Shown here: positions 25,301-60,949 of the stretch, piece after piece
Position numbering within the stretch: position 1 is the first letter of the stretch
Layout of the letters: each line of letters starts with the position of its first letter
Source: Convolutriloba macropyga
Taxonomy: Eukaryota
DNA length: 64,000 nucleotides
Assembly: GCF_964194025.1 (NCBI RefSeq)
Contig: NC_134470.1
Location: 39,432,001-39,496,000 of the forward strand
Direction: 5' to 3'
The notes under the pieces: model-generated
Told to the model about the DNA's origin: nothing
What the model saw: only the letters and a program-made list of their open reading frames with translations
Databases searched by the model: none
Made by a program: the position numbers and the translations under genes

Positions 25301-28300
25301 GCTCAGCTGAAAATAAAAAAGGCTATGCAAAAATATGCGAAAGGATACACGGGGTATTGGATTATTGTAAAGCTTGCATTGCAATTTGATTTGCGTTGAT
25401 TTTCTGATTTTAAGAAAGGAAATAGATTTTCACATTGAGATGAAATCCACAGCAACTAAGAAATTTCTCGCATTTCATATCGTCGAACTTTTGTTTGGTT
25501 TTCATTTTTTATTTCTTGAATACAGTTTGAGTTGCTCTCAAACGAATTTTGTAACAATTATATTAATCCTGTGGTCTTTTTACGACTCGCAGAGGAGTGT
25601 TGAGATTCTACAGGTTTCCTTTTAAATTTTGACTTCTTTTGTTTCGAACATTTACCTCAGTCAACAACAGTTTTTGATTGTTGACTTCTTTTTTCTATCA
25701 CTGAACTCGAGGCGTTTCTTCCACCTACCTAAATCCTCCACCCATCCCCCACTTACCCCCACCCCTTTCCCACTTACCTTAGGTTATTAATAGCCGCCCT
25801 CATCTTCTCAGCCGGCTATTATAGCGCTCCTATTTTTTTTTACAATTCAAAGAATTTGAATTGTATTGGGGCGCTGTCTTTTTTTTTTTTTAAGATCTGT
25901 TCACACATTTTCATGATTTTTGAAGTCAAATTGGAGTAGTGATTTTGGTCACGCCGAAACAGGAAGTGGAGCGAAAAAGCGAGTGGTTTTGCGGCGTGAA
26001 ATTTTTTCGCTCTAATTTTAAAGTAGAGTGAGAATACGGTGTTTGAACAAAAATTCGCTTTATCGGTAGTGGTTTTTTGTTCACATGCGGCAATTTCTCT
26101 TTGATTTTTTCTGTTTTTTCGAATTTTTGGATCGGATTTTTTTCTAAATGGTTTTCCCAATCCATTCATAGTCCTTTCTAGGTCTAGTTTTCTGTTTAGT
26201 CAATGAAAATGTTTTGAATTGTACGTCAGGACTTGTCCTGCTATGTTTTTTTTACTTCGTCGAATAAAAAAATGTTTCGCTTAACCTCATTTTGCCGCCT
26301 TTTCAACATTTTGCGTGAAATCTTTTTGACTTCTCTAGGCTAGTTTCTCTCTTCTCTCATTCTGCTAAAAGTGATTTTGAACATCAGTTGCTCAGCAAAG
26401 CAATTCAAAATGAACAGAGTTAGTACAAAAATGGATGTCAGAAATAGAAACGGGATAAACCCATAAAGCCCAATTTTAGATGCCCGCTATTTGAACGTCG
26501 TTCCTATAAGTCTTATTTACCATCTCTAATGCTTATTGTTATTGATAGGAGCCCCTGTAGCCTCTCTCTAAGAAACAGAAGTATGTTCAACTACGAAATG
26601 CCATCAAAATAAATCGGACTTAAAAAAATGTTTTTGTACAAAAATCTTTTTTTTTCAATATCTTCTGTTATTTCAATCCCAATCATGCTTATTTGAATCA
26701 ACGGCGGCTATTTTCCGGCAATCTGCCGGGTATGTTTAATTTAGGTTAGTGATTTTATTGCACTACTCTTCGGGTCGTTTCCGGTATTCTTCAGGCTATG
26801 TTTTTGTGATTTCTCGTCTGAACCTTTTAACTTTCGTCCTCAAAAATGGGATGTACAGGTTGCGCCCGGAGGAAATTATGGGCTCTTAGAGCCTCTCTTC
26901 TTACTATACTCTAAGTGTGCAATTGAAATAAATTGTTTTAGAGACATTTTCATGATGAGAAGGGAGGATATTATAATTTGACCCCCCTTCATCCTCTCGG
27001 CAATTAAGTTAAAGCTAGTGATGCTAGCCTCCCTAAACCGTATGTAGCGACTGTCGAAGCCAACCACTCGCCAGTGGTTTGAGAGCAATTCGGCCGACGG
27101 TTGTCGGTTATGTTCTGAATTTTTGAGCTTTCTGGCGTGTTTTCAAGATTTGTTTCTGCCATAGTTTGTGCGAATTCAATTTGCGCGAAGGTGGTAACTA
27201 GTCTGTGAGTTCCAATTGCTGCTCTAAATTGCATATCAAGTATTGATTGAAAAAGTCCCAACTAACGGGACAAATGCGACCTACTTTATAAATGCAATTT
27301 AAATTAAAATCCATTTTTGGTGATCGGTGAGGCAAACTGAGGAATGAATATAATTTACATTACTTGTCTTGGTGTGTCTTTTCACAAGGTCTTTTCATTT
27401 TTAATAGCCGCCCTCATCTTCTCAGCCGGCTATTATTGCGCTCGTATTTTTTTTTACTTCGTCAAACTTTTTTTCGCTTTACCATTTTGCCGCTTTTTCG
27501 ACATTTTGCGTGAAATCTTTTTGACTCCTCTAGGCTAGTTTCTCTCTTCTCTCATTCTGCTAAAAGTGAATTTGAACATCAGTTGCTAAGCAAAGCAATT
27601 CAAAATGAACAGAGTCGGTATGAAAAATTGAAGTCAGAAATAGAAACGGGATAAACCCATAAAGCCCAATTCTAGATGCCCGCTATTTGAACGTCGTTCC
27701 TATAAGTCTTAGTTACCACCTCTAATGCTTATTGGTGTTGATAGTAGCCCCTGTAGTCTCTCTCTCTCTCTAAGAAACAGAAGTATGTTCAACTACGAAA
27801 TGCCATAAAAATAAATCGGACTTAAAAAATATTTTTGTACAAAAATCTTTTTTTTTCAATATCTTCTGTTATTTCAATCCCAATCATGCTTATTTGAATC
27901 AACGGCGGCTATTTTCCGGCAATCTGCCGGGTATGTTTTTCCATTCAGTGTCTCTGTCAGGCTAGTTGCTGTGCCAAGCACAGGCTCGCACGATCCATCT
28001 TGTTTATTTTTCAGTCACGGTCAGTGGAGGATAAAAATTCTCCGAAAATTCTTTTAATAGCCGCAACGCGATAGCTGAGGCTATTTTTGGCCCTCTCTTG
28101 GTTTTTACGAAGAGGAGTATTGGTTTTCGGAGGAGCAGGGTATTGATTTTCTTGAGATTTTCTAAAACTGGAAGTATCGTTTGTTCAAACGACCTAAAAG
28201 CGGAAGTAAATTTTTGAATGAACTATTTTTTTCTCAGCCAAAGAAGTTTTTTGATCATGCGCGGCCTTCAGTGAATGCCTTTTCGACTTTGAAAAGTGTT

Positions 28301-31300
28301 TGTGAGAGAATGGTGCATATAGATAACCCGTTTTCATCCTTTTGGCTCAATTTCTTTCCTTGTAATTTGGTTTTTTGTAAAAAATAGTTTTGACCAAAGC
28401 TGCCTTAATATGTAGCTCTTTGAAATTGATACCACAAAGTTTTTGAGAGCATAATAATGCGTTTCAAGTGCAAAATAGGCACCTGTTTCTCTATTTTTGG
28501 AATTTTTTATTTGGTTTCTTTTGCTAAAAAAATAAGTACCTTTGCAACATCCTCTTGACAATTCATGCATTTGGCATATCTCTTTAAATTGGTTTATTTT
28601 TTTGTGTTTTATAAAATTGTACATATACTAATCCACTTTAGCAGTTTTTTTCCAATTTTTGTGTTTTTAGTTTTTTAGATTTAATTTCTAGAAAATATTT
28701 TTTAATGCTCCGGCACGGATTTCAATGTTGTGCTATGAATAATTCGTTTAGTTTTTCGCGTTGTTTTTGCAATATTGTGAAAAATTTGTTTCCTTAACGC
28801 ACTTTAACAATATTTTGACAATTTTTTTGCAAAATACTTCAGTGTTTCGAATCGCCGAACTACTTCACCTTTTATTTAGACAAGAGATTGGGTATGTATT
28901 TTTCTGAACCACGATCGCCAAGTAAAGTTTTCTGTTTTTCTACTTCATTTTCCTATTTGATTTTTTACTTTCAAAAATTTTGGAAGTAGTTTCGTTTTTT
29001 ATTTTTTGGAATGTTTTTGTGTTATCATTACTCTAGCATTCTCCTTGTTCTAGAATTCTTTTCAGACCTAGAATTTATTAGCGGTATTTTATTCGTTAAA
29101 AACTTGTCCTTTTTTGTTAGATTTTTCAGCTTAAGTTTTTATTGATTTGGAATTGATTTCATATAATGCAGCACTTAGACTTTTCCGGAGTTAGTCTGCT
29201 ATCTCGCAAGAGAGAAATATATCTTTTTTGCCCTAATTTTTCTTTGCTGTGACTCGATTTTCTCGATTCCTCTTATTTTTTTAAGGCAATTTGGTTTCCA
29301 TTATTAATACCTGGAATATCTTTTCCGACTCGGCCGCAGAGTTAGTTCTCGTGACAATATTTAGCCCGGTCAGTTTTTTTGACCCGCTGAATTATTTTCG
29401 ATCCCACAAAGTTTTTGAGAGCACAAAGTTTTTGAGAGCATAATAATGCGTTTCAAGTGCAAAATAGGCACCTGTTTCTCTATTTTTGGAATTTTTTATT
29501 GGTTTCTTTTGCTAAAAAAATAAGTACCTTTGCAACATCCTCTTGACAATTCATGCATTTGGCATATCTCTTTAAATTGGTTTATTTTTTTGTGTTTTAT
29601 AAAATTGTACATATACTAATCCACTTTAGCAGTTTTTTTCCAATTTTTGTGTTTTTAGTTTTTTAGATTTAATTTCTAGAAAATATTTTTTAATGCTCCG
29701 GCACGGATTTCAATGTTGTGCTATGAATAATTCGTTTAGTTTTTCGCGTTGTTTTTGCAATATTGTGAAAAATTTGTTTCCTTAACGCACTTTAACAATA
29801 TTTTGACAATTTTTTTTGCAAAATACTTCAGTGTTTCGAATCGCCGAACTACTTCACCTTTTATTTAGACAAGAGATTGGGTATGTATTTTTCTGAACCA
29901 CGATCGCCAAGTAAAGTTTTCTGTTTTTCTACTTCATTTTCCTATTTGATTTTTTACTTTCAAAAATTTTGGAAGTAGTTTCGTTTTTTATTTTTTGGAA
30001 TGTTTTTGTGTTATCATTACTCTAGCATTCTCCTTGTTCTAGAATTCTTTTCAGACCTAGAATTTATTAGCGGTATTTTATTCGTTAAAAACTTGTCCTT
30101 TTTTGTTAGATTTTTCAGCTTAAGTTTTTATTGATTTGGAATTGATTTCATATAATGCAGCACTTAGACTTTTCCGGAGTTAGTCTGCTATCTCGCAAGA
30201 GAGAAATATATCTTTTTTTGCCCTAATTTTTCTTTGCTGTGACTCGATTTTCTCGATTCCTCTTATTTTTTTAAGGCAATTTGGTTTCCATTATTAATAC
30301 CTGGAATATCTTTTCCGACTCGGCCGCAGAGTTAGTTCTCGTGACAATATTTAGCCCGGTCAGTTTTTTTGACCCGCTGAATTATTTTCGATCCTAAGAA
30401 TTTGGGCCAATTTTTAACGTTTCCAGATGCTTTTAGTAATATGAAAGTTTGTGGTATCAAAATATCACACAGTGTCTGTCAAAATTAGTTGTTGAGATTT
30501 TTTTTAATAGCTGCTGGCAGCCATTATTTAGGCGCTCTTTTTTGAATTCGGTTTACCTTTTCATCACGTTTTTCGTTTTACATGAGTCACAATTTTTACT
30601 TCTGAATTAACTCACTGACCGTTTCAGCTGAATGTCTTTTACGTTATTTCATGGATTGAATTACGCAATGTAGTGAATACAGTCAACGGAAACTGGATAA
30701 ACTGATAATGCCCGGTCGTTAAGTCATAGAGCATTGGGTTATCAAAGTTCGTTTGAGTGATTGCTAGCTGACATTAATTAAGCTTAATAGCTTGGTTTCG
30801 AAGCTGAATTAGTTATAGTTTTAGAATTTAACTGAAACTGCACTTTTTTGACACTGAAAAAGAACTGGGTCAGTTATTTTTCGGCAATTCGCCGGCTTTG
30901 TTTTGAATAGGTTCTTATGATGTCCAATTGATGTAGTATTTGTTTGTATGTGAGCTAGCTCGATGATGTCAATGCTCAAATTTTTCTTTTTAAGGTATAT
31001 TTTATGAAATATTTTCAATTCTGACGAGGTAAAGAATAACTGTTTCCAGACAAAGATAATGGTTTCGACTGTACTAAGGGTTTTGCTGGTGAAGTTCCTA
31101 GACTTCGAGTTGCTTCCGGAGTTCTTCTGGTCATGTTTTTAAACCAGAAGTACTATTTGCTCGAACGGTTTTTTGATCTAAATGCGAAAGTTAGTAAAAT
31201 TGTCGTATGAACTAATTTTTTCTCCGCGAGAAGTATTTTGATCATGCGCTGCCTTATTAAATGACTTTTTTTTGAAAAGTGCTTTGATAGAATGGCGCAT

Positions 31301-34300
31301 CTAGATAACCATTTCTGGCCGTGTTTTGTCCATTTGGTTCAGTTTTCCCTGTAATTTGGTTTTCTGTTCAACTAGTTTTTCAAAGCTGTATGAATATATA
31401 AATTGATGCTACAAAGTTTTTGTGATCCTAAAAATGCGTTTTAAGTGCAAATTAGGCATATTTCTTTATTTTTTGTTAAATTGGATATTTTCACTGATTT
31501 TTATTATGGAAAGGAGGTCCTTTGGCAACGTCCTTTTGACAATTTTTACCTTAGACACATCTCTTTAACTTAGTCATATATGTTTCATAGAATTTTTCTT
31601 ATACTAATCCGATTTTGGCTTTTGTACATTTTTCTCAGCTTTTCCGTTTGTGTTTTTGGGGTTTTAATTTCTGGAAAGTCTTTCTGTGCACAGGCACAAA
31701 TTTTACTTTTGTGTTATGAACAGTTAGTTTATTTTTTGGAGTTTCATGGAAATTCAGTGAAAAATTTGTTTCAAAAGCCCAGTTTTAACAATATTTCCAC
31801 ATTTTTGTTTGCAAAGTATTTTGCATCAAATCTTTGCACTGATTCAATTTTTTGATTGAGTCAACAGTTTAGGAATTTAATCTTCTGGGACTTGAATACT
31901 AATTAAAATTATATATTTTCTACTTCGTTTTCCTGTTTGCTTTTTTTGGCTTGGAAGTTTACCTCGAAACAATCTTTTTATTCGTTTGTTCTTGTTTTCT
32001 CAATGTTTTTGAATTTTGAATACTCTAGCATGTATCGTTCTAGCATTCTCCTCAGACCTACATTTTTATTGTCTCTGATTTTTTATTCGTTAAGAAGTTT
32101 TAATTATTTTTTGTTAGATTTTTTATAATTTTTTGTTGGTTTGCAATTGATTCCGTAAATAATGCAGCACTTAGAGTTTGTTCAATTTTGAAATGTTAAG
32201 TTTTGTGGTTTTTGGGCTAGGTTTTTAATAAACAAAATTTTGCTTTTGAGGATTTTTCTGTTATTCAATGATTTGAATTCATTTCATTTTCTATCTCCCA
32301 ACAAGAGAAAAATTAAGTGGAGCGCCAGAGAAAATGTTTAGTGTTTTCTTGAGTCCCCTTAATTTTAGTTTTCTTTTATTCGGAAGGCAGTTTGGTTTTT
32401 AGTGGTGATACCTGCCTTATGCTGCTTTTGGGTCGCAGTTGCGGAACTAATTTTCAAAAATTATTTAGTTACTTTGTGACAATTTTTATGCCGGTCTATC
32501 TTTTCAGCCCATGAAAATTATTTGATAGTAAGGATTTTGGCCAATTTTCAATGTTACCAGATATGTTTTAAGTGATATGAAAGTTTATGGTATCAAGATA
32601 TCAAAATTAGTGTCCGCTGTCATAATTATGTCTTTAGATTTAGATTTTGGAGTCTTTCTTATGATCTTTTACTGATGTTGTATTTGTTTTCATGTTAACT
32701 AGTTTCAATGATGTCGAACTTGTGAAAAAGAGAAAAAGATTTTATTTTTGCTGAAATCTGTCGTAATGAAGTATAAATTTTTTACCAAATATTTTCACCG
32801 AATCTGGTAAGGTTAAGAATGACTTTTAAGACAAAAGATAATGTATTCGGCTTTAGTAACGGTTTTGTTGATGAAGTTCTGGCGCTTCCGGATTTTTTCC
32901 GGCTATGTTTTTTGTTTTATTTCGTCTTTAAAATTTTTGTTACGACCATATGACGTTACTATCACTTCAAATATGCTTTTTGTTTATTCGTTCGTGCAAT
33001 TTCAACTGAATTGCGTGTGTGACCTCATATTCCACTCTTAGTAGAGCGAGTTTTTTTACAATTTAAAGAATTTGAATTGTATTGGGGCGCTGTCTTTTTT
33101 TAAAGATCTGTTCACACATTTTCATGATTTTTGAAGTCAAATTGGAGTAGTGATTTTGGTCACGCCGAAATAGGAAATGGAGCGAAAAAGCGAGTGATTT
33201 TGCGGCGTGATTTTTTTTCGCTCTAATTTTAAAGTATAGTGAGAAAACGGTGTTTGAACAAAAATTCGGTTTCTCGGTAGTGGTTTTTTGTTCACATGCG
33301 GTAATTTACTGTTTTTTCGATTTTTTTGGAGCGGATTTTTTCTAGATGGTTTTCCCAAACCATTCAAAGCTCATTCTAGGCCTAGTTTTTTGTTTGAATT
33401 AAATTTTCATTTCTCGCTAGTGGTTTTTTGTTCACATGCGGCATTTTGATATTGATTTTCTGTTTTTTTTCTTATATTTTATCTGATTTTTTTTTAAAAT
33501 GGTTTTATCAATTCACTCATAGTCCATTCTAGGTCTAGTTTTTCTGTTTAGTCAATCAAAATTATTTGAATTGTACGTCAAGACTTGTCCTGCTATGTTT
33601 TTTTCATTTGCGTAATTAATTTTTGGTCACACGTGACTTACCTCACTCTCGAAAATGACTTCCTCACTCAATAATTTGTGTTCTGTCCAAGAATTTGACT
33701 GTTCTTCACTTTAATTGAAAGAGATAAGGTTAAGTGAATGTGTGTGTCACTCTAATTGAAGGTTATTTGAGGTCATCTAATAGAAGCAGCCTTAATTATA
33801 CAGATTCTCAATCAAAATATTACATATCAGCGTTTAATAAAAATTTCTTTTGCTCGGCTTCTTTTACTATCTTTTTGAGACTGCAGATCTAGGAAGCTAT
33901 TGCGGCTATTTTCTGGCAATCTGACGGTTATGTTTGTGTTGTTTGTTATCAGTATTGTTTGGGTATCCGTTTCTTAGCACTGCAAGGTAAGAAGTTATTC
34001 TGAAGGTGCTTCTTTGCTTAGTTTAAATTTATTAGCAACAATAGTATTTAAAATATACCTTTCTTTGAGCAAATTGTAAAGTTGCGTTTAAACTATTTGA
34101 TACTCAGCTGTTTTTGGAATGTTTGAATGAATAAATCGTAAAGCGTGGCAATGAATAGATGTGAAAAAAAGTGAAATCTTTTTTATATAGGACTACATGT
34201 ACGTATGTGACCAGCTGAGGTCTGTGAGGCAAGACCTGACAGTGCAGTGCATTAGGGATGACTTCACAGTCACAGTGTACGAAACACACGCCCGAGTGGC

Positions 34301-36799
34301 CATAGAGCAGGGCGACTACCAGGAATTCAACCAGTGCCAGACTCAGCTCAAGGCGCTCTACAATGAAGGTATGCCTGCCTCCTTCGCGGATTAATATTAT
34401 TTTTAATAGCCGCACAGCGATAGCTGGGCTATTATTGGCCTTCTCTTGGTTTTTTTTTACAATTCAAAGAATTTGAATTGTATTGGGGCGCTGTCTTTTT
34501 ACGACTCGGAGTATTGGAGAAGTCATTTTTTAAATCAATTTTAGGAGTGATTTTTGAAGCGGGAAATTGAAAAGCGTGAAAAAATTTGGAGTGATTTTTG
34601 TGCTGAACAAAAGTGAAGAGTGGAGCGAAAAGAGAGTGGTGCGAAAAGAGAATGTGTGAAAAAATTTTCTCTAAGCGAGCGAAATTTTTTTGTTCACGTG
34701 CGGCTTTTAAAAGCAGTATTTTTGAAACGTTTGATGGTTCTGAGGTTTGATTATGATATTGTATTAGTTTTAGGCTTGCTGTGATAGGAATTGAAGGTTT
34801 CCAGTAGTTAATTTGAGATTAATACTAATTTCGAGGTTTTGGATCAGTTTTGATGATTTTTAGACGATATTTAATAATTTTTTGCCTGTTTTTTTTTTGT
34901 TTTACTGCTTTAAGTGGGATTTGAATAGAAGCTTGTTACCTAAGGAATTTTCTTTCAGATACCAATTGATTAAAGTTTTGTTGGTATAAAATATTTTTTT
35001 CTAAGTAAAAATGACATAAAATTTGAGAAATTTCAAACCATTTTTCTTTTTTTTTGCAGTTATTGTTTGTAATCAAGTTTTTTTAAGCCCATTATGACTT
35101 ACCCATTGCTTTGCGAGATTTTCATTGCTCTAATTGCAAAGGAACTTTACTATTAAAAAAACTCATTATTAAGTTTGTCTAGGTTTTTTTGTTCAATTTG
35201 TTTTTGAATGCCGTTTCTATTCTTCCTTATTTTTATGGCATTTGTGAAGGTTTAGGCTTCGCAATAGTTGTTCTAGTTGTTTAGTCATAATTATGGGCAA
35301 TTTTCTCCGAGTCGTTTCCGGAATTCTTCCGGCTATGTTTTTTTTAAGATCTGTTCACACATTTTCATGATTTTTGAAGTCAAATTGGAGTAGTGATTTT
35401 GGTCACGCCGAAACAGGAAGTGGATCGAAAAAGCGAGTGGTTTTGCTGCGTGATGTTTTTTTGCTGTAATTTTGAATCAGAGTGAGAAAACGGTGTTTGA
35501 ACAAAAATGCGCTTTCTCGCTAGTGGTTTTTTGTTCACATGCGGCAATTTCACTTTGGTTTTTACTGTTTTTTCTATTTACTGGATCGGATTTTTTCTAA
35601 ATGGTTTTCCCAATTAACTCATAGTCTGTTTTAGGTCTAGTGTTTTGTTTAGTCAATGGAAATTCTTTGAATTGTACGTCAGGACTTGTCCTGCTATGTT
35701 TTTTTTTCGTCGTCGCGATTTTTGTTACGACCATATGACGTCACAACCACTTTTAAATCTGCTTTTTGTTCATTCATTCATGCAATTTCAACTGAATTGC
35801 GTGCGTGACGTCATTTTTTAGTGGAGCGAGTTTTTTGTTCATTCGCGTGATTAAGTTTTTGGTCACATTTGACTTACCTCACTCTCAAAAATGACTTCCT
35901 CACTTTGAAATTGACTTTTATTTACCTTAGTTCAAAGAGATAAGGTCAAATGGGTATGTGTCACTCTAGATGAAGGTTATTTGAGAGCAATTAATAGAGG
36001 CAGCAAAAACTTATACAGATTTTCAATCAAAATATAACATATAAGCCTTCAATGAAAAGACGAGTTTTTTTTGGTCTGTCTTTTTTACTGTTTTTTAGAC
36101 TGCAGATCTACAAAGCTATTGCGGCTATTTTCTGGCAATCTGCCAGCTATGTTTTGATGTTTGTTGTTAATTTTATTCGGGAAATTTTGTTAACTAACTG
36201 CGGTATATCACTGTCGCTGTGAAGCGTATGCTAAGATTCAGTAAGGTGTTTCTTTTCCTAGAGCCCCATAATTGTTTTTCGGTTTGATATTTGCAGAAGA
36301 ATATATTAACTATTGGTTTTGTGAGCGTACAAGTTTGCCGTGCGCAACAACGGAGTGAAAATATGGTTCTGTTTTAGGACTTGCTGGGGCTTGTTGGGAG
36401 TTCACAGCATACCGTCTCCACTATTACATCTTCACAAATGCCCCTAACGACTGCATTCACTACATGCGGACACTCACTGACGAGGGAAAAGCTTACGAAG
36501 TGGTGAAACACGCAGTGGATGTGTTCAAGTCTTGGTCACACGGGAACTATGTTGGATTTTTCAAACTATACAAAAATGCGCCCTTGATGAGCGGCTATAT
36601 GATGGATTTGGTGATTGAGAGAGAACGAAAGAAGGCTTTGAAGATAGTTTGCAAAGTGTACAGACCTACGATTGAGATCACATATTTGGCCGAAGTGTTA
36701 GCATTTGATGATTACGATGCATGTGTTGCTTTTTTAGTTGGCCAAGGTTATACCTTGGAAAATCAAACTCTAGATTGTAGAAAAGCGCCAAGCCAGTAA
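21846..36799 (+). CDS. LENG8: Leukocyte receptor cluster member 8 homolog (LENG8/THP3; SAC3/GANP-PCI domain), join(21846..22354,22558..24400,34191..34368,36378..36799), about 983 aa
   Basis: GT-AG introns with matching phases (2,0,1); total 2952 nt, divisible by 3. LENG8 motifs: [117 protein letters not shown]. Confidence 0.93.
22558..24400 (+). CDS. LENG8: LENG8 coding exon 2 (Q/G/N-rich, RS-rich, RGG repeats, start of SAC3 domain)
   Basis: Acceptor TTTGTTTAG|G; donor AAG|GTAATA at 24401; open frame of 1843 nt. Confidence 0.92.
25787..26736 (+). mobile_element. HINE family B1 (subTIR AATAGCCGC), interrupted by a family-C copy
   Basis: 5' TTAATAGCCGC..CGGCTATTA hairpin; 3' GCGGCTATT-TT-CCGGCAATCTGCCGG-GTATGTT. 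Removing 25840-26247 reconstitutes the 27401-27937 copy. Confidence 0.85.
25840..26247 (+). mobile_element. HINE family C (subTIR TACAATTCAA), about 410 bp
   Basis: 5' TACAATTCAAA-GAA-TTTGAATTGTA palindrome; 3' TTGAATTGTA-CGT-CAGGACTTGTCCTG-CTATGTT. Confidence 0.85.
27401..27937 (+). mobile_element. HINE family B1, intact uninterrupted copy (537 bp)
   Basis: Both termini present; inserted in a T-run with no obvious target-site duplication. Confidence 0.85.
28433..30394. repeat. Near-perfect tandem duplication, unit about 972 bp (28433-29404 / 29422-30394)
   Basis: The sequence repeats almost base for base, with a 17-bp stutter at the junction. Confidence 0.95.
30504..30902 (+). mobile_element. 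HINE family B3 (about 400 bp)
   Basis: 5' TTAATAGCTGCTGGCAGCCATTATTTAGGCGCTC; 3' CGGCAATTCGCCGG-CTTTGTT; body homologous to 60503-60949. Confidence 0.65.
33057..33599 (+). mobile_element. HINE family C copy nested in B2
   Basis: TACAATTTAAAGAATTTGAATTGTA start; TTGAATTGTACGTCAAGACTTGTCCTGCTATGTT end. Confidence 0.8.
34191..34368 (+). CDS. LENG8: LENG8 coding exon 3
   Basis: Acceptor TTTTATATAG|GAC; encodes [19 protein letters not shown]...KALYNE; donor G|GTATGC. Confidence 0.93.
34403..36153 (+). mobile_element. HINE family B2 containing C (34457-35700), which contains D (34499-35339)
   Basis: Three 5' termini in series (AATAGCCGC; TACAATTCAA; ACGACTCGG) and three cognate 3' termini in reverse order (CCGAGTCGT+CCGGAATTCTTCCGG; TTGAATTGTA+CAGGACTTGTCCTG; GCGGCTATT+CTGGCAATCTGCCAG), each ending CTATGTT. 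Confidence 0.85.
36378..36799 (+). CDS. LENG8: LENG8 coding exon 4 (terminal)
   Basis: Acceptor GTTTTAG|GA, phase 1; encodes [19 protein letters not shown]...LDCRKAPSQ, then stop. Confidence 0.93.
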
Positions 36800-39700: not shown

Positions 39701-40399
39701 ATGTTGGAACATTTTGTGCTACGCACTTACTCGCACGAGACGTCTTGTTGAGATTATGGAAATAGTTTTGATGTTAAGGGCGTGATAAGAAAGTGATATT
39801 TCTTTGGCGTGATTGCTGATACCACCAGTTTATGAAATTTTTGGCAGAAGTATAAAAGCTGGCAACCGAAAATTGATTCCCTGAGCAATGCATCAGATTG
39901 CTGTCCTGATGGCATGATCCTTTTTCTAACTTCACTTAACCACAAGCCGATTGAAAGTTTCTAATAAGAGTCGTATCAGATTTTTTGTCAGATATTACAG
40001 AAACATTACGCAAAACATCAACATACAGTGTGACTTTTGTATCTTTGAAAAATGTATGTCTTTACTGGAAGCAACTCAAGACAATGTAACGGTTTCAAAT
40101 GTTGAAATTATCTAATCTGATAACAGATTCTATTTTGAATAGAAATGATTGAGGGTCGAGGCTCCTATACACATTTTGAAGGCATTGAAAGATTTTGTTC
40201 TGCAAACAGATCAAGATAAATATCGTTCGTCCATGTGTCGAAGTCAAAAAGCCGAATCAATAAAGAATGAAACGAGATTTTAGAACTGGAAATCATTTTT
40301 GGTTGACTAACCTATTAATGAGACATGAATAATGTCTGAATTGAAAAGAAATTCTAATGACGCGATTCGATTCGTTTCATAAGTAAGAGAGTTGTTTGC

Positions 40400-42541: not shown

Positions 42542-43163
42542 ATGTCAAAATACTATCTATCGTTCGCTCGTAACAAGAGTATATCACAAGTAGTAGAAAA
42601 AGGAATTGGAGGACGACATTCTGATGCCGGGTTTACTATAGCAGTATTTGGAGGAACCGGACAGATTGGCAGGAACCTCTTGACTCGAATGGGTCGCGAG
42701 GGTGTACAGGCGGTAGTGCCTCATAGACTAACTGATAAGAAAGTAATTCACTTCAAGCCCATGGCGGATCTTGGTCAGTTCAATTTCATTCAGTTCTATG
42801 ACATCAGAAATGACGAAGCAACTGAGCAGATTGTAAAGTATTCAGACGTTGTAGTGAACTGTATTGGACGAACTTATCCAACTCGGAATTTCGCACTAGA
42901 TGAAGTCCACGTTCACTGGCCAGATAAACTCTCAAAAATGTGCAAAAAGCATAATAAAGATAGACTTGTTCACATGTCGGCTTATGGAGCTAACTCGAAA
43001 GCTGACAGCAGTTTTCTCAGGTTAAAGGCTGCTGGCGAGAAAGTGATGAGACGGAATTTTCCAGAAAGTGTTATCTTGAGACCGGCGCGTGTGTTCGGAA
43101 GAGCTGATGACTATTTGACGTTGATGCGATTTTTACCCCACGTCGCTGGAAATATTCTTGTAG
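42542..43163 (+). CDS. NDUFA9: NDUFA9 coding exon 1
   Basis: ATG at 42542, 6 nt after an acceptor-like TTTCAG (an upstream exon is possible); donor G|GTACGT. Confidence 0.9.
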
Positions 43164-46100
43164 GTACGTACCACAAAAACTTTTCAATTATTTGAAAGAG
43201 TTGACACGTTTTGTATAGGTTTTAAATTGGCTATGTTGTCCAAGAATGAATGGTATTACACGAGAGCCCGGTGATGGTAGATTTTGGTCATAGTTTTGAA
43301 GTTTTATTCTAGCATATGTACCCAAATGCCTTATTTGTTAAAATTTTGTCAAAGACCCACAACAAATTGAATTAGGGAGTTTTTCGAGGGAGCTTTTTCA
43401 GGCAAGCGTTGGTCCGACAAAAAAGCAATTCTGAAGATGCCAATTCATGTTGGCGACGTTGGACAAGCACTTCTGAATGCCTGTCGGATGCCCAAAATCG
43501 AAGGCAAAACTTTCGAGTTGCTCGGGTCCGAGGCCTATTACCTGAATGATCTGCACCAGTTTGTCCATGGAACTATGAGCGGTGATTCCTCAGATGATAA
43601 TGGGGAGTATCAGACGCAGATTAGACATGTTCCCATTGGAATGCTCAAGGCATACGCAAAGATGCAAGAGTTGGCGTGGTTCATGGGTTAGTTGAAATGG
43701 GTTAGACTCATACGTCACCTCAGACTCATGCTTCTCATAACGTAAGCGTTCCCTCAGTAAATAGCATTGCATCCCCTCAATCAGCATTACCTATTCCAAT
43801 AATGCAGATTAGTTGTTAGGCTGCGATAGATGTACCTTTCTTTAACCCTTTCAGTACTGCAATTTATGTAGCTTCTCCATACCATACACCCATTATATCT
43901 CCAGTGTACGGGCGTAGTGCTCCTTTTTAATCGTGTTGAGTTGGCCCACAGCACCCCACACCTTCGGTCCCTTCTTTGGACTCCGCGGATTTGATCGAGC
44001 AGTTGGCAGACGCAATCACTAGTTAGAAGTACAAGCTATTGCTTGAGTTCAATTTGTCACAGTACAATTGTGACCACGTGCAGTGGCATGAACGGTATGG
44101 GCAATTTAAAAGCGCCATAGACTCACAGTCCTTGACAGATAACGTCAAGTTGACATACTTCAAAACTCTTGTTACTGCGAAGCAACGACCGACAGCGCAG
44201 AGTGTACTTGCCGTGGTGTAATATACAAAGAGCCACTTAAGACACTGGAACGTAAATTTGACCAACAAGAGGCATTTGTAAGTGCACACGCACACAAAGG
44301 CAGCTCTTTGCCTCCATTTAAGTTGCACAATAGTATAACATAATAGACTATTCTGCTACCCCATTTCAAGTCTTTTAGGAGGCTTTGTCACTTTCATTCT
44401 AAATCCTTAACTCGACTTTGCAACAATTGCCGTACAATATGAAAAAGGCTTGGCAGCTCCTGACTGTCCTAAAGCTTTCACTCCCTAAGTTCAATGACTG
44501 GTTGAAGCAAAAGGCCGAGACACGTCTTGACGAATAAAGGATGATCAAGGGCAAAAGCTGAGGATAACCACTTAGTAGTAGAGACCACAATTGCCTCAGA
44601 AAACGTTTGGTGCACACAAAGGGCACCCAGAGACCTGCGGCAAGCATTGTGTGCAGAGGTAATAACATTTAGGAGTGTCTCGCTACATTAGGGAAAAAAC
44701 TCACACTCAGCGAGCTAAAATTGTTGCCAAAGCAAAGCTGTTTATTTCATGTCTAACGGATAACACATGTTCAGGCAGTGCCTCGATTATAGAATATACC
44801 AGAAGGATGGTCACAACAGCTCACAGAACACACTTCTACATGTAGCTGAAAGGGTTGTTCCACATAAACCCTCAACAACTAGCAACAGCAATGCAGCCGG
44901 TATACGTAAAATTAAACCATCGACTGGGCAGTAATCAAGTAAGACAAATACTATGTCATCTTTTTAATAGCCTCCCGCAGCTTCTCAGCCGGCTATTATA
45001 AGGCTCCTATTTTTTTCACCTCTTTTAATAACATTTTTTTTGCTGTGCCTTAGTTCACAGCCTGTTCAACATTTGGTGTGAAAGCTTTTGACATCTCTAG
45101 GCTAGTTTCACTCTTCTCTCATTCTGCTAAAAGTGTTTTTAGACTGCAGTTGCTCAGCAATCTAAAATGAACTGAGTCAGTTTAAAAAAATCACAAGTAG
45201 AAACGGGATAAACCCATAAAGCCCAATTTTACATGCCGATTACTCGAACTTTGTTATTAGTTATCATTTCTAATGGTTATTGGTATTGATACTAGCCCTT
45301 GTGTTGTCTCACTACTAGACAGGGGTATGTTCAGCTCTAAATTGACATCAGAATTGTTTGCATGTGAATTTTGTTTGTACAAAAAATCCATTTTTATTGT
45401 TTTATCTCATTTTTCAATCCCAGTCTTGGTTATGGGAATCCGCGGCGGCTTTTCCCGTCAATCTGCCGGTTAGGTTTGTAATGTGAAAGGCCGCGTTCAG
45501 GTGACTGAATCGAAGTTGGTTAAGTCTGCTTGTACAGATACCAAGGCTTTTTTTTGTGCGATACCGCAAGTAATTCTTGGGTAGTGAGCAGTCTCGCGGG
45601 TAGCAAGGTGAAGCTCTAAGGCTAACAGGCAAGGGTATAAATAACGAGGAGGTAGTAGATCCAAGGGTTGTTGGACTAACTGTAACCGCTAAAAGAAGTA
45701 TGTGTTCGAGACGTTCAAAGTGAGTCCCTATGTGAGGGAAACCTTGATGTAGATACAGACATCTTTCACGTCAAAGCACTTACCATCGCCTAGACTATAA
45801 CATATTGTCATGAAACATTGAGATTGTACTTGAACATGATTTGTTTCACGCCATCCACCTGCGCATCGACATGTTTCAAAGCTAATATGGGGGCGGATTT
45901 TGAATTGGCTAGTCAGGACGTCGAATCGTACGAAATCGCACTTAAGCGAGTGTACGCACGATCGCTGCGAACGCGCGTGCTCATCAAACCATTGAAAAGG
46001 CCACAGTGTATAATAGAACAGGATATGTAGGAGTGCTGTTGTTTGGAGATAACACGCCACTTTCCAACAATTACTTCTCGTCACTTGCAATTGAACTCGT

Positions 46101-51869: not shown

Positions 51870-51890
51870 AAAAATTCAAAAAGTAAATCA

Positions 51891-52001
51891 AAATTTCAAA
51901 AAGTAAATCAAAATTTCATTAAGAACTATTCCTTCGAAAAACTTTTATAGTTTTTCGAAGGAATAGTTTTTAATGAAATTTTGATTTACTTTTTGAAATT
52001 T
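51891..52001. repeat. Near-perfect palindrome with ~52-bp arms and a 5-nt loop
   Basis: AATTTCAAAAAG...CCTTCGAAAAACT-TTTAT-AGTTTTTCGAAGG...CTTTTTGAAATT, 1 mismatch. Confidence 0.9.
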
Positions 52002-52091
52002 TACTAAATTTTTGGAGTCCTATAGCATAAACTCGGTGACCAAACGTTCAAAAATCTACCTGATGAATATTAAGTGAACCTATATTGTGCT

Positions 52092-55000
52092 TTGAGTGGA
52101 CAGCTAATGGCTGTTAAGAATTAAAAAAAATTACATTAGCTGTCCTTTCAAGTTACTACGTCGTTCGCTTACTGCTCTCTAAGAAGCCTCTTGCTTTTTC
52201 AGCCAACAAGTCTATGCCATAGGACTCCGAAAATTTAGTAAACTTTCAAAAAGTAAATCAAAATTTCGTTAAAAAATTTTCTTTCGAAAAATTCTTAAGT
52301 CTTAACAGCCATTAGCTGTCCCCTCAAAATACTATATAGGTTCGCTTAATGCTCTTCAGGAAGCCTATTGCAATTCTAGTCAACGAATTTATGTCTGGGC
52401 TACAAAATCTTAATAAAATCTCAAAAAGAAAATCAAAATTTAAAAAAAATATTAAAACTCAGAATCGGAGCCATAAAAAATGGTCGATTCCTGAAAAACG
52501 AATTGTTTGTTCAATGGGCATTATTTGACTGTAAATGAGGTTTGTCTTGAACACAAACTGGATTTTAAAAGTGACTAGTCTCCAAGTGAATTGAAAAAAA
52601 AAACAATAAAAAAACATGAAATGGTTTTTAAAAAATCAGCTCTCAAATAGAAATCGAGTTTTTTTCATAGTAAACGTCCCTTTGAGACGAAAACTACCCC
52701 TTTTATGGCCTTTCGTCCGTTAGAATCACAAGACTGTTTCATTTGTAGCAGAAAATGTAATTTTGAATTGATATTTTTTATAGAAAAAAAGGGAACACAA
52801 TCATGCCAAACATCACGTGTTCACGCAAAACTTTAAACCTCGATAACTCCTCAAAAAACACGAAATTCAAAAGAGTCCGAACTCTACGTGGGACGAGCTT
52901 TTTAATGATACCACTCACAGTTCTCTACTATGAATATATCGATCGGCCAAAATTGACTGAACAAAAAAACCCATTTGAATATATAGTTCCTCCCCCAAAA
53001 AGGGTCCGAAATATTAAAAAGGTTAAATTCTCTAGCAGCAAAAAAGCCAAAAAAGCAGTAACTCATCATACCTTCAATTTGATTCAATTCAAAACATACT
53101 GGATGTGCAGTGTTGCAATTGCTCTCTGAGACAAACGAGAGCCTTCGGTTAACTGATCTCTAAAATCTCAAAAAAGCTTGCAAGATCACAATAGCGTGAA
53201 AAGCAAGGTCTCAAATTGAAACCTGAATAACAAATTTCTTTAACTGCCGAATTTTAGTCCAACACTCCCTCAGCCTCGTTGCAAAAAAAAGCTGCCATGA
53301 AGCCCAACATGTTTTTGGAGCGAAGAATTAAAAAAAAATTTGAAAATTTTTTTTTTGGCTAATAATCGATAAATTTGTTTTTGTGAATGGTAGGTCAGTC
53401 TCAGTAAAGACAAACCCCCCTCCATTTTACTACATCTACATTTTTGCGGTTAAATGTCTTTTGGCTCCATGACTTCGATGCCACAAGTTTTCAAAATTTA
53501 GAAAAAAAATTTTCGCTAATTTTTTCGTAAATTTGTTTCCTTTTGAAATCTTATCACATTATCCTAATATTGATTTTTAACATTGGCTAAGAGAAGCCAT
53601 TCATTGGATTATAAAGAAAGTTTTCAAAGAAAGCTCATAGTTTAAATGGCTTCGACAATTTCTTCTCGCACTTTTCTACTGATTTTTTTTGTTTTTGCCT
53701 GTATTTGTTGTTGTTTTCATAGTCATCGGACTTTTTGCGATGTTGTCGTCTTGATGAATTAAAGTTGTCATTGCTGTCTTCCCATTGAGCTTTGAGGCAT
53801 AATTTAGAATATTTATTGATTTCTGTTGAAAGCAATTGAATTTAAGGGCTGTTGAGACTTCAAATATAATTTCAAATTTTTTTGTACATTAAACGATATT
53901 AAACTTATTTTGAACTCTAAGTCAGTCTCACTATTGACAGGACCTCTTCCTTTTTTTGCAACCAAAATTAATCTGGTTAGCGGTTTTATCTTCTATCGTT
54001 TTTAAGGAATCGACCATTTTTTTGTGGCTCCGATTCTGAGTTTTAGTATTTTTTTTTAACTTTGATTTTCTTTTTGAGAATTTATTAAGATTTTGTGGCC
54101 CTATGACATAGATTCGTTGACTAGAATTGCATTAGGCTTCCTGAAGAGCACTAAGCGAACCTATGTAGTAATTTGAGGGGACAGCTAATGGCTGTTAAGA
54201 CTTAAAAAATATTTTTTCGAAAGAAAATTTTTTAACGAAACTTTGATTTACTTTTTGAAAGTTTACTAAATTTTCGGAGTCCTATGGCATAGATTTGTTG
54301 GCTGAAAAAGCAAGAGGCTGCTTAGAGTGCAGTAAGCGAACGACGTAGTAACTTGAGTGGACAGCTAATGGCTGTTAAGAATTAAAAAAAATTACATTAG
54401 CTGTCCTTTCAAGTTACTACGTCGTTCGCTTACTGCTCTCTAAGAAGCCTCTTGCTTTTTCAGCCAACAAGTCTATGCAATAGGACTCCGAAAATTTAGT
54501 AAACTTTCAAAAAGTAAATCAAAATTTCGTTAAAAAATTTTCTTTCGAAAAATTCTTAAGTCTTAACAGCCATTAGCTGTCCCCTCAAAATACTATATAG
54601 GTTCGCTTAATGCTCTTCAGGAAGCCTATTGCAATTCTAGTCAACGAATCTATGTCTGGGCTACAAAATCTTAATAAAATCTCAAAGAAAATCAAAATTT
54701 AAAACAAAACTAAAACTCAGAATCGGAGCCATAAAAAATGGTCGATTCCTGAAAAACGAATTATTTGTTCATTGGGCATTATTTGACTGTAAATGAGGTT
54801 TGTCTTGAACACAAACTGGATTTTAAAAGTGACTAGTCTCCAAGTGAATTGGAAAAAAAAACAATAAAAAACATGAAATGGTTTTTAAAAAATCAGCTCT
54901 CAAATAGAAATCGAATTTTTTTCATAGTAAACGTCCCTATGAGACGAAAACTACCCTTTTTATGGCCTCTCGTCCGTTAGAATCACAAGACTGTTTCATT

Positions 55001-56253
55001 TGTAGCAGAAAATGTAATTTTGAATTGATATTTTTTATTAAAAAAAAAGGGAACAAAATCATGCCAAACATCACGTGTTCACGCAAAACTTTAAACCTCG
55101 ATAACTCCTCAAAAAACACGAAATTGAAAAGAGTCCGAACTCTACGCGGGACGAGCTTTTTAATGATACTACTCACAATTCTCTACTATGAATATATCGA
55201 TCGGCCAAAATTGACTGAACAAAAAACCCATTTGAATATATAGTTCCTCCCCCAAAAAGGGGTCGGAACAACTAAAAAGGTTAAATTCTCTAGCAGCAAA
55301 AAAGCCTAATAAGCAGTAACTCATCATACCTTCAATTTGATTCCTTTTCAAAACATACTGGATTTGCAGTGTCCCAATTGCTATCTGAGACAAACGAGAG
55401 CCTTCGGCTAACTGATCTCTAAAATCTCAAAAAAGCTTGCAAGATCACAATAGCGTGAAAAGCAAGGTCTCAAATTGAAACCTGAATAACAAATTTCTTT
55501 AACTGCCGAATTTTAGTCCAACACTCCCTCAGCCTCGTTGCAAAAAAAAGCTGCCATGAAGCCCAACATGTTTTTGGAGCGAAGAATTAAAAAAAAATTT
55601 GAAAATTTTTTTTTTGGCTAATAATCGATAAATTTGTTTTTGTGAATGGTAGGTCAGTCTCAGTAAAGACAAACCCCCCTCCATTTTACTACATCTACAT
55701 TTTTGCGGTTAAATGTCTTTTGGCTCCATGACTTCGATGCCACAAGTTTTCAAAATTTAGAAAAAAAATTTTCGCTAATTTTTTCGTAAATTTGTTTCCT
55801 TTTGAAATCTTATCACATTATCCTAATATTGATTTTTAACATTGGCTAAGAGAAGCCTTTCATTGGATTATAAAGAAAGTTTTCAAAGAAAGCTCATAGT
55901 TTAAATGGCTTCGACAATTTCTTCTCGCACTTTACTGATTTTTTTTGTTTTTGCCTGTATTTGTTGTTGTTTTCATAGTCATCGGACTTTTTGCGATGTT
56001 GTCGTCTTGATGAATTAAAGTTGTCATTGCTGTCTTCCCATTGAGCTTTGAGGCATAATTTAGAATATTTATTGATTTCTGTTGAAAGCAATTGAATTTA
56101 AGGGCTGTTGAGACTTCAAATATAATTTCAAATTTTTTTTGTACATTAAACGATATTTAATTTATTTTCTTGAACTCTAAGTCAGTCTCACTATTGACAG
56201 GACCTCTTCCTTTTTTGCAACCAAAATTAATCTGGTTAGCGGTTTTATCTTCT
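52092..56253. repeat. Direct repeat with ~2.26-kb period, each unit containing an inverted copy of the family-A 5' end and NDUFA9 3' flank
   Basis: ORF offset 2259 (53635/55894). Inverted termini end at about 53012 and 55271. Identical fold junction GGACAGCTAATG...CATTAGCTGTCC at about 52098 and 54359. Confidence 0.85.
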
Positions 56254-56974
56254 AACTATTGACTTCAAAACTTGGATGGCACGACTTTTCATAATTTTTT
56301 TTTTAATTTTTGGTTTTTTTTTCATAGTTTTGGATTCTATTGAAATCTTACCATATTGTCCTATTATTTACAGTTCCCATTGGAATAGAGAAGACTTGCC
56401 ATAGATCATAGATCAAGTTTTCAGAGAAAACGGTTAGGTTTGAATGGCTTCGACACTGTCTTCTCTTTTTTTTTCTACTTGTTTTTTGGTTTTTGCCTGC
56501 ATTTGTTTTCATATTCTTACGACTTATTGCGATGAATTATTTTTGATTTAAGAATGACAAAAATTATTGCCTTCTCATAGAAGCGTAACTTATTCTAACT
56601 TATTGTTTATCATTTTCCGTTGAAAGCTATTGAATTTAATGGCTTTGATATTACGGATTTTCTCAAAAATTTCGTGGTTTTAATATTGTGGTTTTTATTT
56701 TTGGTTGTAGGTATATTGTTGTATAATATTGTTGGTTTTTGAAGTCATATTGTTACAAAAACCAATACTATTTTTGTTGAAAAATTATTTGAACCTATAA
56801 AAGTTTTTAATGAAAGTTCATTTTTTAATGGCTTCGACATTTCCGGTTTTTGCCTGTTTTATGTTCTTTGTAGTCATAAAGAGCTTAGAGGTCTCATAAG
56901 ACGCTGCTTGAGTGTTGAATGAATGAAGTTACTCAATGCAGTAGATTTACAGCAAATAGCCTTAAATTTTATGA

Positions 56975-57476
56975 TTAATAGCCGCACAGCGATAGCTGGG
57001 GCTATTATTGGCCTTCTCTTGGTTTTTTTTTATTTCGTCGTCATGATTTTTGTTACGACCATATGACGTCACAGCCACTTTTTGTTCATTCGTTCATGCA
57101 AATTCAACTGAATTGCATGTGTGACGTCATTTTTCGCTCTTAGTGGAGCGAGTTTTTTGTTCATGCGCGTGATTAAATTTTTGGTCACACTTGACTTACC
57201 TCACTCTCAAAAATGACTTCCTCACTTTGAAATTGACTTTTATTTACTTTAATTCAAAGAGATAAGGTCAAATGGGTGTGTTTCACTCTAAATGAAGGTT
57301 ATTTGAGATCAGCTAATAGAGGCAGCAAAAACTTATACAGATTTTCAATCAAAATATAACATATCAGCCTTCAATGAAAAGACGAATTTTTTTGGTCTGC
57401 CTCTTTTGCTGTTTTTTTGAGTCTGCAGATCTACGAAGCTATTGCGGCTATTTTCTGGCAATCTGCCAGCTATGTT
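56975..57476 (+). mobile_element. HINE family B2, intact uninterrupted copy (about 500 bp) nested in family A
   Basis: TTAATAGCCGCACAGCGATAGCTGGGCTATTA ... GCGGCTATTTTCTGGCAATCTGCCAGCTATGTT. Confidence 0.85.
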
Positions 57477-59023: not shown

Positions 59024-59325
59024 TTAATGGCCGCCGTCAGCCTCTCAACCGCTATTATTTAGGCGCTCTCCTTCTATTTGAATTTTGCCCCTTTAAAAAT
59101 TTTCTCTTGTCCTATCACCTGGTGTTTTTAATGAGAGATCTTGTTGGTTGCTAATGAGACATGAAAGAAACTAATGAATGGTGCCAGTTTATAGCTAGCG
59201 GTTATCATGACTTAGCCACTATTTGTTCTCAAAATTTTTAGTGATTTTTGAGTTTTTCGTGTCTTTATTGAACTTTTTGTTGTCTTTTCATTTAATCGCA
59301 TTAGGGACATGTCCCTAGTTTCCTA

Positions 59326-59377
<52 letters not shown>

Positions 59378-60949
59378 TATCCATTTAGATTGTTTCCTTT
59401 TAAAGCTATTGATTGCTCTGACTTTGACACTATTTTTTTTCAATAAATATTGTCGATATTTTTTTATTTGACGAGTTTCTTTATCGTCACTGTTGTCTTA
59501 TCTCTTAGTTTCATTAATGGCAGGTCTCATCAGTTTCATAAAGATGTCTCACTTCAGAGGAATTGACTTAATTGTTAGAGGTAATATATTTTGCTCTATG
59601 AATTATACGCTGTTCGTTTTCAACAATATATGAGGTTGAATTCTTGAGTTTCGCATGTATTTGTTCTACTGGTTGCTGTCTAGTCATTTTTTCTCAACTG
59701 TGAAAGGTTTCGTTCATTGCTAATAGAGGTTTATTTCAATGGAAAAAAATCTTTCGGTATGTAGCTAATGCTTTTGTTGACTTTTTTACTGTTAATGATC
59801 GAAAGGTAGCAGCCAGTTCTTCGGAATTTGCGAAAATTGGTCATATTTGTGTTGTCTTATTATTTGGTTTCATTTATGAAAGGTTTCATTGGTTCCTAAT
59901 GAGGTAAAAGTGTATCTAAGTAAATGCATGAGTTCATAAGAATCTGTTTTTGATTCTGACATTTATAAACGTTGAAAATTCATTTTTAGTCTTGCCTTTT
60001 TTGTTGTTTTTCTTGTGGTCCTGTCGCTGACCTTCATAAAAATTACAAATCTCATTGGCGTTTTAGTGTGGCGTAATTTTGGTCAATTTATTTGCCTGAA
60101 GTTCTAGTTACCTTTTTTATTGACTGAGATACTGTTTGTTTTCGAATTGTTTGACGTGAATTTGTTGTGAATTTTCTAATTTCTTCGAACTTCTTATTTT
60201 AGCCTCAATTTTGTGTTGTCTGCCATTAATTCCCTCTAAATTGTTGTATTATGTACTCAATAGGAGGATGTGTAGATTCATTTGTTGATAAATCGTTAAA
60301 ATTATTTGTTTCGCAAAACACTAGATCTAGGAAAACAACATTTTCTAATTGTTTCTAGATTTTTTGTTTAAGTTTGTGCTTATAGGGTCATGGGTTCTTG
60401 CCTGTTTTAGTTTAATAGTGCCGTAAAAATTTTAATTGTCGGTTTGTTGAAAGTTGTTCAATTTTTTGGACTGTAGTTCAGGACTTGTCCTGCTATGTTT
60501 TTTAATTCGCTTTACTTTTTGAGCGTTTTTCGTTTTACATGAGTCACGATTTTCACGTTTTACTTCTAACTTACCTCACTCGCTGTTCCAACTGACCGAG
60601 TTTTAAATTCGTTGACTTTTTGAATTATGCAATGTACTGAATACGGTCAATGTCAAAAGAGCAAAATCATGAGAATTCTGATAAACCGATAAAGCCCGGT
60701 CATTAAGTCATAGTGCATTAGGTTTGCAAAGTTCATTAGAGCGATTGCTAGCTGACCTTCATATTAATCTGAATAGCGTTCAGTTTAGAGGTTTAATTAA
60801 TTATATGCTTAATAGCGTTCAGTTTAGAAGCTGAATGAAGTGTAACTTTAGAATCTAACCGAATATGCAGAATTTTCACACCAAATAAGAATACTTTGAC
60901 ATTTAAAAAAATTCTGTCCTTTTCTTTCTCTTAATTTGCCGGCTATGTT
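59024..60949 (+). mobile_element. HINE family B3 with a ~1.4-kb C-like insert (about 59070-60499)
   Basis: 5' TTAATGGCCGC...CGCTATTATTTAGGCGCTC. The insert ends CAGGACTTGTCCTGCTATGTT (60499). The B3 body resumes at 60503 and ends TGCCGGCTATGTT. Confidence 0.6.
59327..59373. repeat. (TA)n microsatellite, preceded by the 16-bp palindrome TAGGGACATGTCCCTA (59302-59317)
   Basis: Seen directly in the sequence. Confidence 0.95.

Follow-up and report, generated by a model that had tools for sequence, protein, structure and literature searches.

The window analysed here, 64,000 nt of contig NC_134470.1 from Convolutriloba macropyga (all coordinates below are window positions), is AT-rich animal DNA with many repeats, in which short non-coding elements, every one of them on the + strand, are densely clustered at 25.5-36.2 kb and 56.9-61 kb. 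Judged by their sequence, these elements can be assigned to at least five families of non-autonomous Helentron/Helitron2-type rolling-circle transposons (HINEs) of textbook type, and the present analysis concerns the way in which they are nested inside one another. All families share a common end grammar that can be written T-run|A ... hairpin-YTATG|T-run. The 5' end is an A immediately 3' of a T-run, next to which the B, C, and E families carry a palindromic subterminal repeat (AATAGCCGC...GCTATT in B-type elements, ACAATTCAAAGAATTTGAATTGT in C, and TTGCTCTCAAAC in E), and at the 3' end a matching subterminal repeat is followed by a 5-6 bp hairpin, YTATG, and a T-run. Features by which HINEs are recognized were found accordingly, including subterminal inverted repeats (5'/3': AATAGCCGC / GCGGCTATT in B, ACAATTC / GAATTGT in C, ACGACTCG / CGAGTCGT in D, and TTGCTCTCAAAC / GTTTGAGAGCAA in E), 3' stem-loops each followed by YTATG (CCGGCAATCTGCCGG, CAGGACTTGTCCTG, TTCCGGAATTCTTCCGG, and CCGACGGTTGTCGG), and insertion between T's with a variable number of terminal T's and no target-site duplication (TSD), as seen in five cases in which a filled site was compared with an empty one. 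With a length of 0.4-1.5 kb, the elements have, as is typical of HINEs, no Pfam-bearing open reading frame (ORF); no autonomous Rep-helicase(-endonuclease) partner was found in the window or in the 36 kb read beyond its end. These families are new, and of a known HINE kind.

In the B, C, and E families, a T-run lies 12-16 nt behind the 5' palindrome, and we refer to this T-run as the "pad". A GCGCT motif stands ahead of the pad T-run in B1, B3, and C, as an initial annotation of this stretch had described, and is absent from B2 and E. The copies on which the analysis rests are the following:

25530..27112, + strand: E, the outermost host, with 5' end AGTTGCTCTCAAAC, 3' subterminal inverted repeat GTTTGAGAGCAA, hairpin CCGACGGTTGTCGG, and TTATG
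25582..26800, + strand: D in the E pad, 52 nt inside E, with 5' end ACGACTCG and 3' end CGGGTCGT followed by a hairpin and CTATG; hosts B1a at +205, outside any pad
25789..26734, + strand: B1a, with its pad (T9 at 25833-25841) filled by C; compared with the empty copy B1b; a contig joint at 26734 corresponds to its 3' end
25842..26245, + strand: C in the B1a pad, with its own pad (T13 at 25879-25891) empty; hairpin of -7.4 kcal/mol, z -3.9
27403..27935, + strand: B1b, uninterrupted reference, with its pad (T9 at 27447-27455) empty and an equal T9 at 27848-27856 also empty
28056..33932, + strand: B2a, with D-like units at the pad (28107) and C in the body (33058); the body resumes at 32908 and 33598, matching B2c
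28107..31141, + strand: D-like unit 1 (Dl1) in the B2a pad, holding ~1-kb tandem repeats and a B3-like element
30506..30900, + strand: B3-like element in Dl1 at a T4 (non-pad), with its own T6 pad empty; empty paralogous site in Dl2 at ~32650
31146..32907, + strand: D-like unit 2 (Dl2), without its first ~55 nt, beginning exactly at the D-type pad position
33058..33597, + strand: C in the B2a body, at a T6 behind a 7-bp stem; empty sites at 57153-57158 and 35832
34405..36151, + strand: B2b, in an intron of a SAC3/GANP-like gene, with its pad (T9 at 34450-34458) filled by C
34459..35698, + strand: C in the B2b pad, with its own pad filled by D
34501..35337, + strand: D in the C pad, 42 nt behind the C 5' end
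44966..45474, + strand: diverged B1-like copy, with its T7 pad empty
56977..57474, + strand: B2c, uninterrupted reference, with its pad (T9 at 57023-57031) empty
59026..60947, + strand: B3, with its decayed pad filled by a C-like element
59070..60497, + strand: C-like element in B3, with its 5' end truncated or decayed and its 3' end intact

The initial annotation had claimed that HINEs repeatedly insert, in the same orientation, into the T-run located 42-55 nt inside another HINE, past its 5' hairpin, and had listed five such events together with a sixth in the body of B2. Using uninterrupted paralogues within the same window as empty sites, we found all six to be real insertions, located within 2 nt of the positions proposed. 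For C in B1, 53 nt from the host end, the first A of the insert stands at 25842 after the T9 at 25833-25841 and the B1 body resumes at 26254: empty B1 (27403) reads ...CGTA-T9-ACTTCG, and filled B1 (25789) reads CTA-T9-[C, 25842-26245]-T8-ACTTCG. The D-like insert of B2 starts at 28107 after a T5, with the B2 body resuming at 32908 in a match to the empty B2 at 56977, while C in the second B2 copy starts at 34459 after a T9 whose empty paralogue lies at 57023-57031, with the body resuming at 35699 (empty B2 at 56977: TTGG-T9-ATTTCGTCG; filled B2 at 34405: TTGG-T9-[C, 34459-35698]-T9-CGTCGTCG). D in C starts at 34501 and the host C resumes at 35338, giving GCTGTC-T5-[D, 34501-35337]-T8-AAGATCTG, where the C copies intact at this site (25842 and 33058) read GCTGTC-T7 (or T13)-AAGATCTG. 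The 5' junction of the C-like element in B3 is degenerate (~59070); its C-type 3' end, CAGGACTTGTCCTGCTATG, was found at 60497, past which B3 sequence (TTTTTTAATTCGCTTTAC) continues in agreement with the empty B3-like copy at 30506. A doubt about this insertion had arisen from TTTGAATT, which stands behind the T-run in that empty copy too, and was dropped in view of the C-type 3' end just described and the return of B3 sequence past it. Finally, C in the B2 body starts at 33058 in a T6; the empty paralogues at 57153 and 35832 show this T6 behind a 7-bp stem. In these comparisons a T-run stands on both sides of the insert and no duplication besides T's was seen. All inserts are indeed co-oriented, which is unsurprising for elements with a T-rich top strand and a single-strand T-run as target.

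Three further nested insertions were identified. One is an additional pad hit, that of D 52 nt inside the new family E, whose pad is the T5 at 25577-25581; E was defined by contig loose ends (~320 contigs per run with loose ends before 25532, at its 5' boundary) and a proper 3' end, and E-like heads with empty pads also occur at 37428 and ~42120. The first nest is thus four deep, E[D[B1[C]]]. The other two lie off-pad, at plain T4-T5 sites: B1 in D at +205, and the B3-like element in a D-like unit at +2.4 kb, in a T4 according to the paralogue. Overall, 6/9 nested events occupy the T-run found 42-55 nt inside the host, and these pad hits involve three or four insert families and five host families (E, B1, B2, C, and B3). 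The seven C- and D-type copies in the window are without exception nested inside other HINEs, six of them in pads, and the host body resumes in every nest, none of which is a mere head chimera.

Several additional observations bear on the structure of these copies. After insertion, the T-run is found near full length on both sides of the insert (25833-26253, 34450-35707, and 33051-33604; T9 becoming T9 plus T8/T9, and T6 becoming T7 plus T7), so that inserts carry 4-8 T's of their own and each insertion makes a new long T-run. Within Dl1, a ~980-bp internal repeat occurs twice at 28426-30394, with 99.5% identity between the copies, and a ~70% identical copy lies in Dl2, a satellite-like array typical of HINEs. 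Dl2 starts (31146) directly after the 3' end of Dl1 (31141), and could be a same-family pad nest with collapsed duplicate heads or the product of a T-run-mediated exchange. C (26076), D (34683), and B2 (57159, in the form GTTCATGCGCG) have in common an internal T-run with GTTCAC(A/G)TGCGGC behind it, located in B2 at the internal insertion site, which suggests module exchange between families that otherwise look unrelated. A D-like head at 2832-2890 (ACGACTCGATGAG...) precedes an empty T8, behind which stands ATCTGTTCACA, just like in the body of C, and may represent a further hybrid family in ordinary DNA. Every recognizable B-, C-, D-, or E-type copy at 25530-60947, primary insertions included, is on the + strand, in the orientation of the SAC3/GANP-like gene (large exon at 22472-24409 and exon at ~34260-34370) and of an NDUFA9-like gene (42542-43195), and the elements may have a strand bias with respect to transcription or replication.

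One account of the clustering at pads is that of a passive hot spot, in which the machinery favors long T-runs on one strand and the pads of abundant HINEs are simply hit often, with no recognition of hairpin or terminus. A T-rich or TT target is established for HINEs (PMC4067079, PMC7492417), and several results weigh in this direction and against a preference for pads as such. No T-run of the host exceeds its pad in length (T9 in B1 and B2, T7-T13 in C, T6 in B3-like, and T5 in E elements). A model in which every TT is an equal target gives P ~1e-5 to 1e-8 for six pad hits; a length-only model fitted to the same nine events (~2.9-fold per extra T) expects 4.2 pad hits versus the 6 observed, with P(>=6 of 9)=0.09-0.12 within hosts, and an extra pad factor of ~8-fold improves the fit no more than marginally (likelihood-ratio statistic 3.8-4.5). 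Within hosts, a model based on T-run length is rejected only weakly (p about 0.03-0.12). When T-runs >=9 inside HINEs are considered, 4/7 pads and 0/5 non-pad runs are filled (p=0.08). D-type heads have only T4-T6 with no hairpin, and no clear pad hit; primary insertions of B and E types show no excess of upstream hairpins (p=0.45); and single-strand folding gave no supported hairpin in the decayed B3 head or in D heads. Finally, the hypothesis arose on this same window, and the sole new sample adds one event.

Other comparisons count against such a passive hot spot. Among T-runs >=7 inside HINEs, 4/9 pads are filled versus 1/34 non-pad runs (Fisher p=0.0046), two of the filled pads being classed by family-typical length (B2 T9; C ~T8-9), with only T5 left on their 5' side. 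Across the window, none of the 54 runs of T>=8 outside HINEs (both strands) or of the 12 non-pad runs in HINE bodies has a C- or D-type occupant, so that 6/14 pads versus 0/66 long T-runs are filled (Fisher p=1e-5, or p=6e-4 with + strand non-HINE runs only), a test that presumes independent in-place insertions, where composites may instead have come as units. The T9 runs at B1 +446, equal in length to the pad, are empty in both copies, and insertions are found in T4-T6 runs, which a very steep length rule would forbid. The argument of the initial annotation, that T-runs are abundant and hits at an equivalent position therefore point to recognition, finds support in the window-wide excess and is blunted by the length model within hosts. 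Pads are by no means always used (8/14 are empty, hairpin-bearing ones included), and B and E types lie mostly in ordinary DNA with short T flanks (T0-T5). Taken together, the concentration at pads is real and unlikely to reflect T-run length alone, T-run supply by itself does not account for the restriction of C- and D-type elements to HINEs in this window, these families behave like specialists for HINE pads, and we regard the passive hot spot as an unlikely explanation.

The same data speak to the role of the hairpin, which the initial annotation had proposed, together with the terminus, as the landing pad recognized by a shared Rep protein. Judged by single-strand folding, the B1, B2, C, and E heads contain supported hairpins (z -2.0 to -3.9), and the single non-pad event in a T6 or longer, C at 33058, lies directly behind a hairpin of -5.9 kcal/mol (z -3.25), a stability matched or exceeded ahead of only 6/173 non-pad runs (~3%). 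A hairpin is nevertheless not a general requirement, because primary B and E insertions lack an excess of upstream hairpins. The clustering in one equivalent T-run stands, the need for a hairpin does not, and the pad is also the longest or joint-longest T-run of its host. Recognition of the hairpin or terminus by a shared Rep is plausible but unproven, the sharing being suggested solely by the common end grammar, and a cross-family "safe harbour" is speculation.

To look beyond the window, a 749-kb ENA contig carrying the locus was retrieved by exact-protein match, and 36 kb past the window end were read. This extension consists mostly of LTR retrotransposons and holds two further B2 copies. 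In the older of these, a D-type element (ACGACTTGAAG...) sits exactly at +54 and B2 resumes after it, while the pad of the younger copy is empty. Exact-protein searches with ORFs from a C element and from a Pao retrotransposon matched only this contig, and metagenome scans with the C head and with the B 3' end returned 0 matches. Within ~64-100 kb on the window scale, the contig contains one intact and one degraded Pao/BEL LTR retrotransposon, along with a gene cluster that includes an Ulp1-type protease (Peptidase_C48), and several genes called on this "metagenome" contig have in-frame stops under the standard code. It is 100% identical to the window at 15.8-36.2 kb and 99.3% identical at 45.9-64 kb, and holds only one unit of a 2.2-kb direct duplication (an amplification of the NDUFA9 3' end; window 51947-56254), a copy-number difference between either haplotypes or assemblies.

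Public Logan contigs from four sequencing runs were compared with 25500-29400, and the results given here refer to the best 15 of the 2821 joints found and to 24 of the 8574 loose ends, so that the lack of other joints in this set is suggestive only. The summed word depth of the HINE families is 10^4-10^5 times that of single-copy stretches, which is not a copy number and is in line with the high abundance expected of HINEs. Among the best 15 of the 2821 joints were C head, T-run, C head arrangements in two registers (5-8 contigs each per run, in three deep runs), passages from an inner C 3' end into an outer C pad (7 contigs), from the B1 pad into a C head or a B1 head, and from the B1 3' end into C, as well as C-C head-to-tail joints. 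About 600 contigs per run end at the C 5' boundary, and their consensus, which reflects the plurality flank, ends in ...CTTCTCTTGG, i.e. the end of the B2 head. These joints and the C flank indicate that the same junction types are present throughout the genome.

These junctions also bear on a second alternative, in which a few early nests, one per host-insert pair, were copied as units or as head-plus-insert chimeras, and in which counts of nests would measure amplification. The junction contigs are few in kind and deep, the B2 head is the plurality flank of C, and all C and D copies are nested. The C head-to-head joints (25878->25836/7) are ~16x deeper than the matching inner-3'-end joints (26245->25885), an excess that fits amplified multi-headed elements better than complete nests, and many C elements seem to carry extra heads. 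Self-insertion is moreover known to yield multi-terminus chimeras in the FoHeli elements of Fusarium (PMC5148889), and mobilization of composite transposable elements (TEs) is known as well (PMC4016481). Composites and multi-headed forms have thus probably been amplified as units. Against this account, at least six host-insert combinations are found at pads in the window, in addition to C in C and B1 in B1 genome-wide, the D-type insert in the older B2 copy of the extension is internally unrelated to the D-like insert of B2a, and the host body resumes in every nest of the window. With pads used across five host families by three or four insert families, the composites cannot all stem from one or two ancestral chimeras. 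The independence of each composite implied by the initial annotation is put in doubt by the signs of unit amplification in the contig joints; six different host-insert pairs at pads in the window and two genome-wide nevertheless mean that founders chose pads repeatedly. We give founder composites a low probability. A third possibility, that heads were stacked without any insertion, by slippage, unequal exchange, or template switching between the T-runs flanking ~50-nt heads, would suit the T-runs that bracket heads, the abundance of same-family head-to-head duplicates, and the start of Dl2 exactly at the pad position right after the Dl1 3' end, but is very improbable given that cross-family nests hold complete inserts with their own 5' and 3' ends, that the host resumes precisely after the insert, and that matching empty paralogues exist.

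On balance, it seems somewhat probable to us that the pad is a real preferred landing site, chiefly for C- and D-type families, in which a long T-run is combined with the context of the HINE 5' module. Integration is strand-specific, directed into T-runs, and without target duplication, and under this preferred-site model the preference would be set by a long T-run plus the 5'-module context rather than by length alone. The 5' module contains a copy of the 3' subterminal repeat, oriented as at the 3' end, and behind it a short palindrome, in many cases with GCGCT, and the T-run; this layout resembles the element's own 3' end, where the enzyme would cut before a T-run, and may mimic it. A fixed target strand would make every nest co-oriented, and as the host keeps both of its termini, composites would stay mobile and be copied on, some of them turning into multi-headed chimeras. 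A more specific version, in which the 5' module is a pseudo-3' end that is bound and nicked by the Helentron Rep/endonuclease, with a terminus thus directing integration, and in which C and D are specialised "parasites of parasites" that dwell almost exclusively within other HINEs and hitch-hike on them, is possible but doubtful.

Helentron target choice and cutting have, to our knowledge, not been studied biochemically, the sole reported rule being a T-rich/TT preference. A landing site of ~50 nt, composed of a palindrome, a spacer, and a T-run, represents a defined substrate for nicking and strand-transfer assays, and landing at pads would explain the origin of multi-headed and composite rolling-circle elements. 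If the targeting is real, these would be transposons that limit harm to their host by landing in one another. Nests of this kind also break repeat libraries and gene models, and are therefore relevant to the annotation of very repeat-rich invertebrate genomes.

In bacteria, structured motifs, either palindromic or of the hairpin-plus-T-run type, serve as harmless landing sites for class C group II introns behind terminators and for IS elements in REP sequences, although the enzymes and hosts involved are unrelated and the likeness is an analogy only.

The closest known counterparts of the present elements are the HINE/DINE-1 families (Thomas, Vadnagara & Pritham 2014; PMC4067079) and the oyster Cg_HINE (PMC7492417), for which T-rich or TT insertion, absence of a TSD, and variable terminal T's have been reported. 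They share subterminal inverted repeats (palindromic in some families), a 3' stem-loop, internal tandem repeats, and very high copy number with the families described here, whose terminal sequences are absent from the Cg_HINE supplement and from the literature searched. Unlike the present elements, these papers report neither nesting at a fixed position behind the 5' repeat nor families confined to other HINEs; in the literature searched, we likewise found no fixed cross-family landing position behind a 5' palindrome and no families essentially confined to other HINEs. In the Helitron2-like FoHeli elements of Fusarium, short 5' pieces (first 31-85 nt) are similarly stacked ahead of another element, and the authors ascribe these multiple 5' termini to self-insertion near the 5' end and subsequent chimeric transposition, which would start at the outer 5' end and stop at the inner 3' end (Chellapan et al. 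2016; PMC5148889). FoHeli insertions, however, involve the same family, few copies, and a TNAT|A target, with no landing-site rule proposed, whereas the present nests are cross-family and complete, use a T-run 42-55 nt inside the host, and concern families of very high abundance. Arrays of tandem and nested Helitrons, usually ascribed to rolling-circle read-through or recombination rather than to a defined internal target (PMC12628747; citations in PMC5148889), similarly contain co-oriented adjoining or nested copies with truncated inner ones. T-run targeting, the lack of a TSD, variable terminal T's, tandem and nested copies, and multi-terminus chimeras are hence already published. What the present locus adds is that the pad is the host's longest or joint-longest T-run in B, C, and E, that 6/9 nested hits fall there, and that the seven C and D copies are all nested while 66 T-runs of equal length elsewhere in the window are empty; if the 5' module does act as a pseudo-3' end, eukaryotic rolling-circle transposons would offer here their first reported case of structure-guided target choice.

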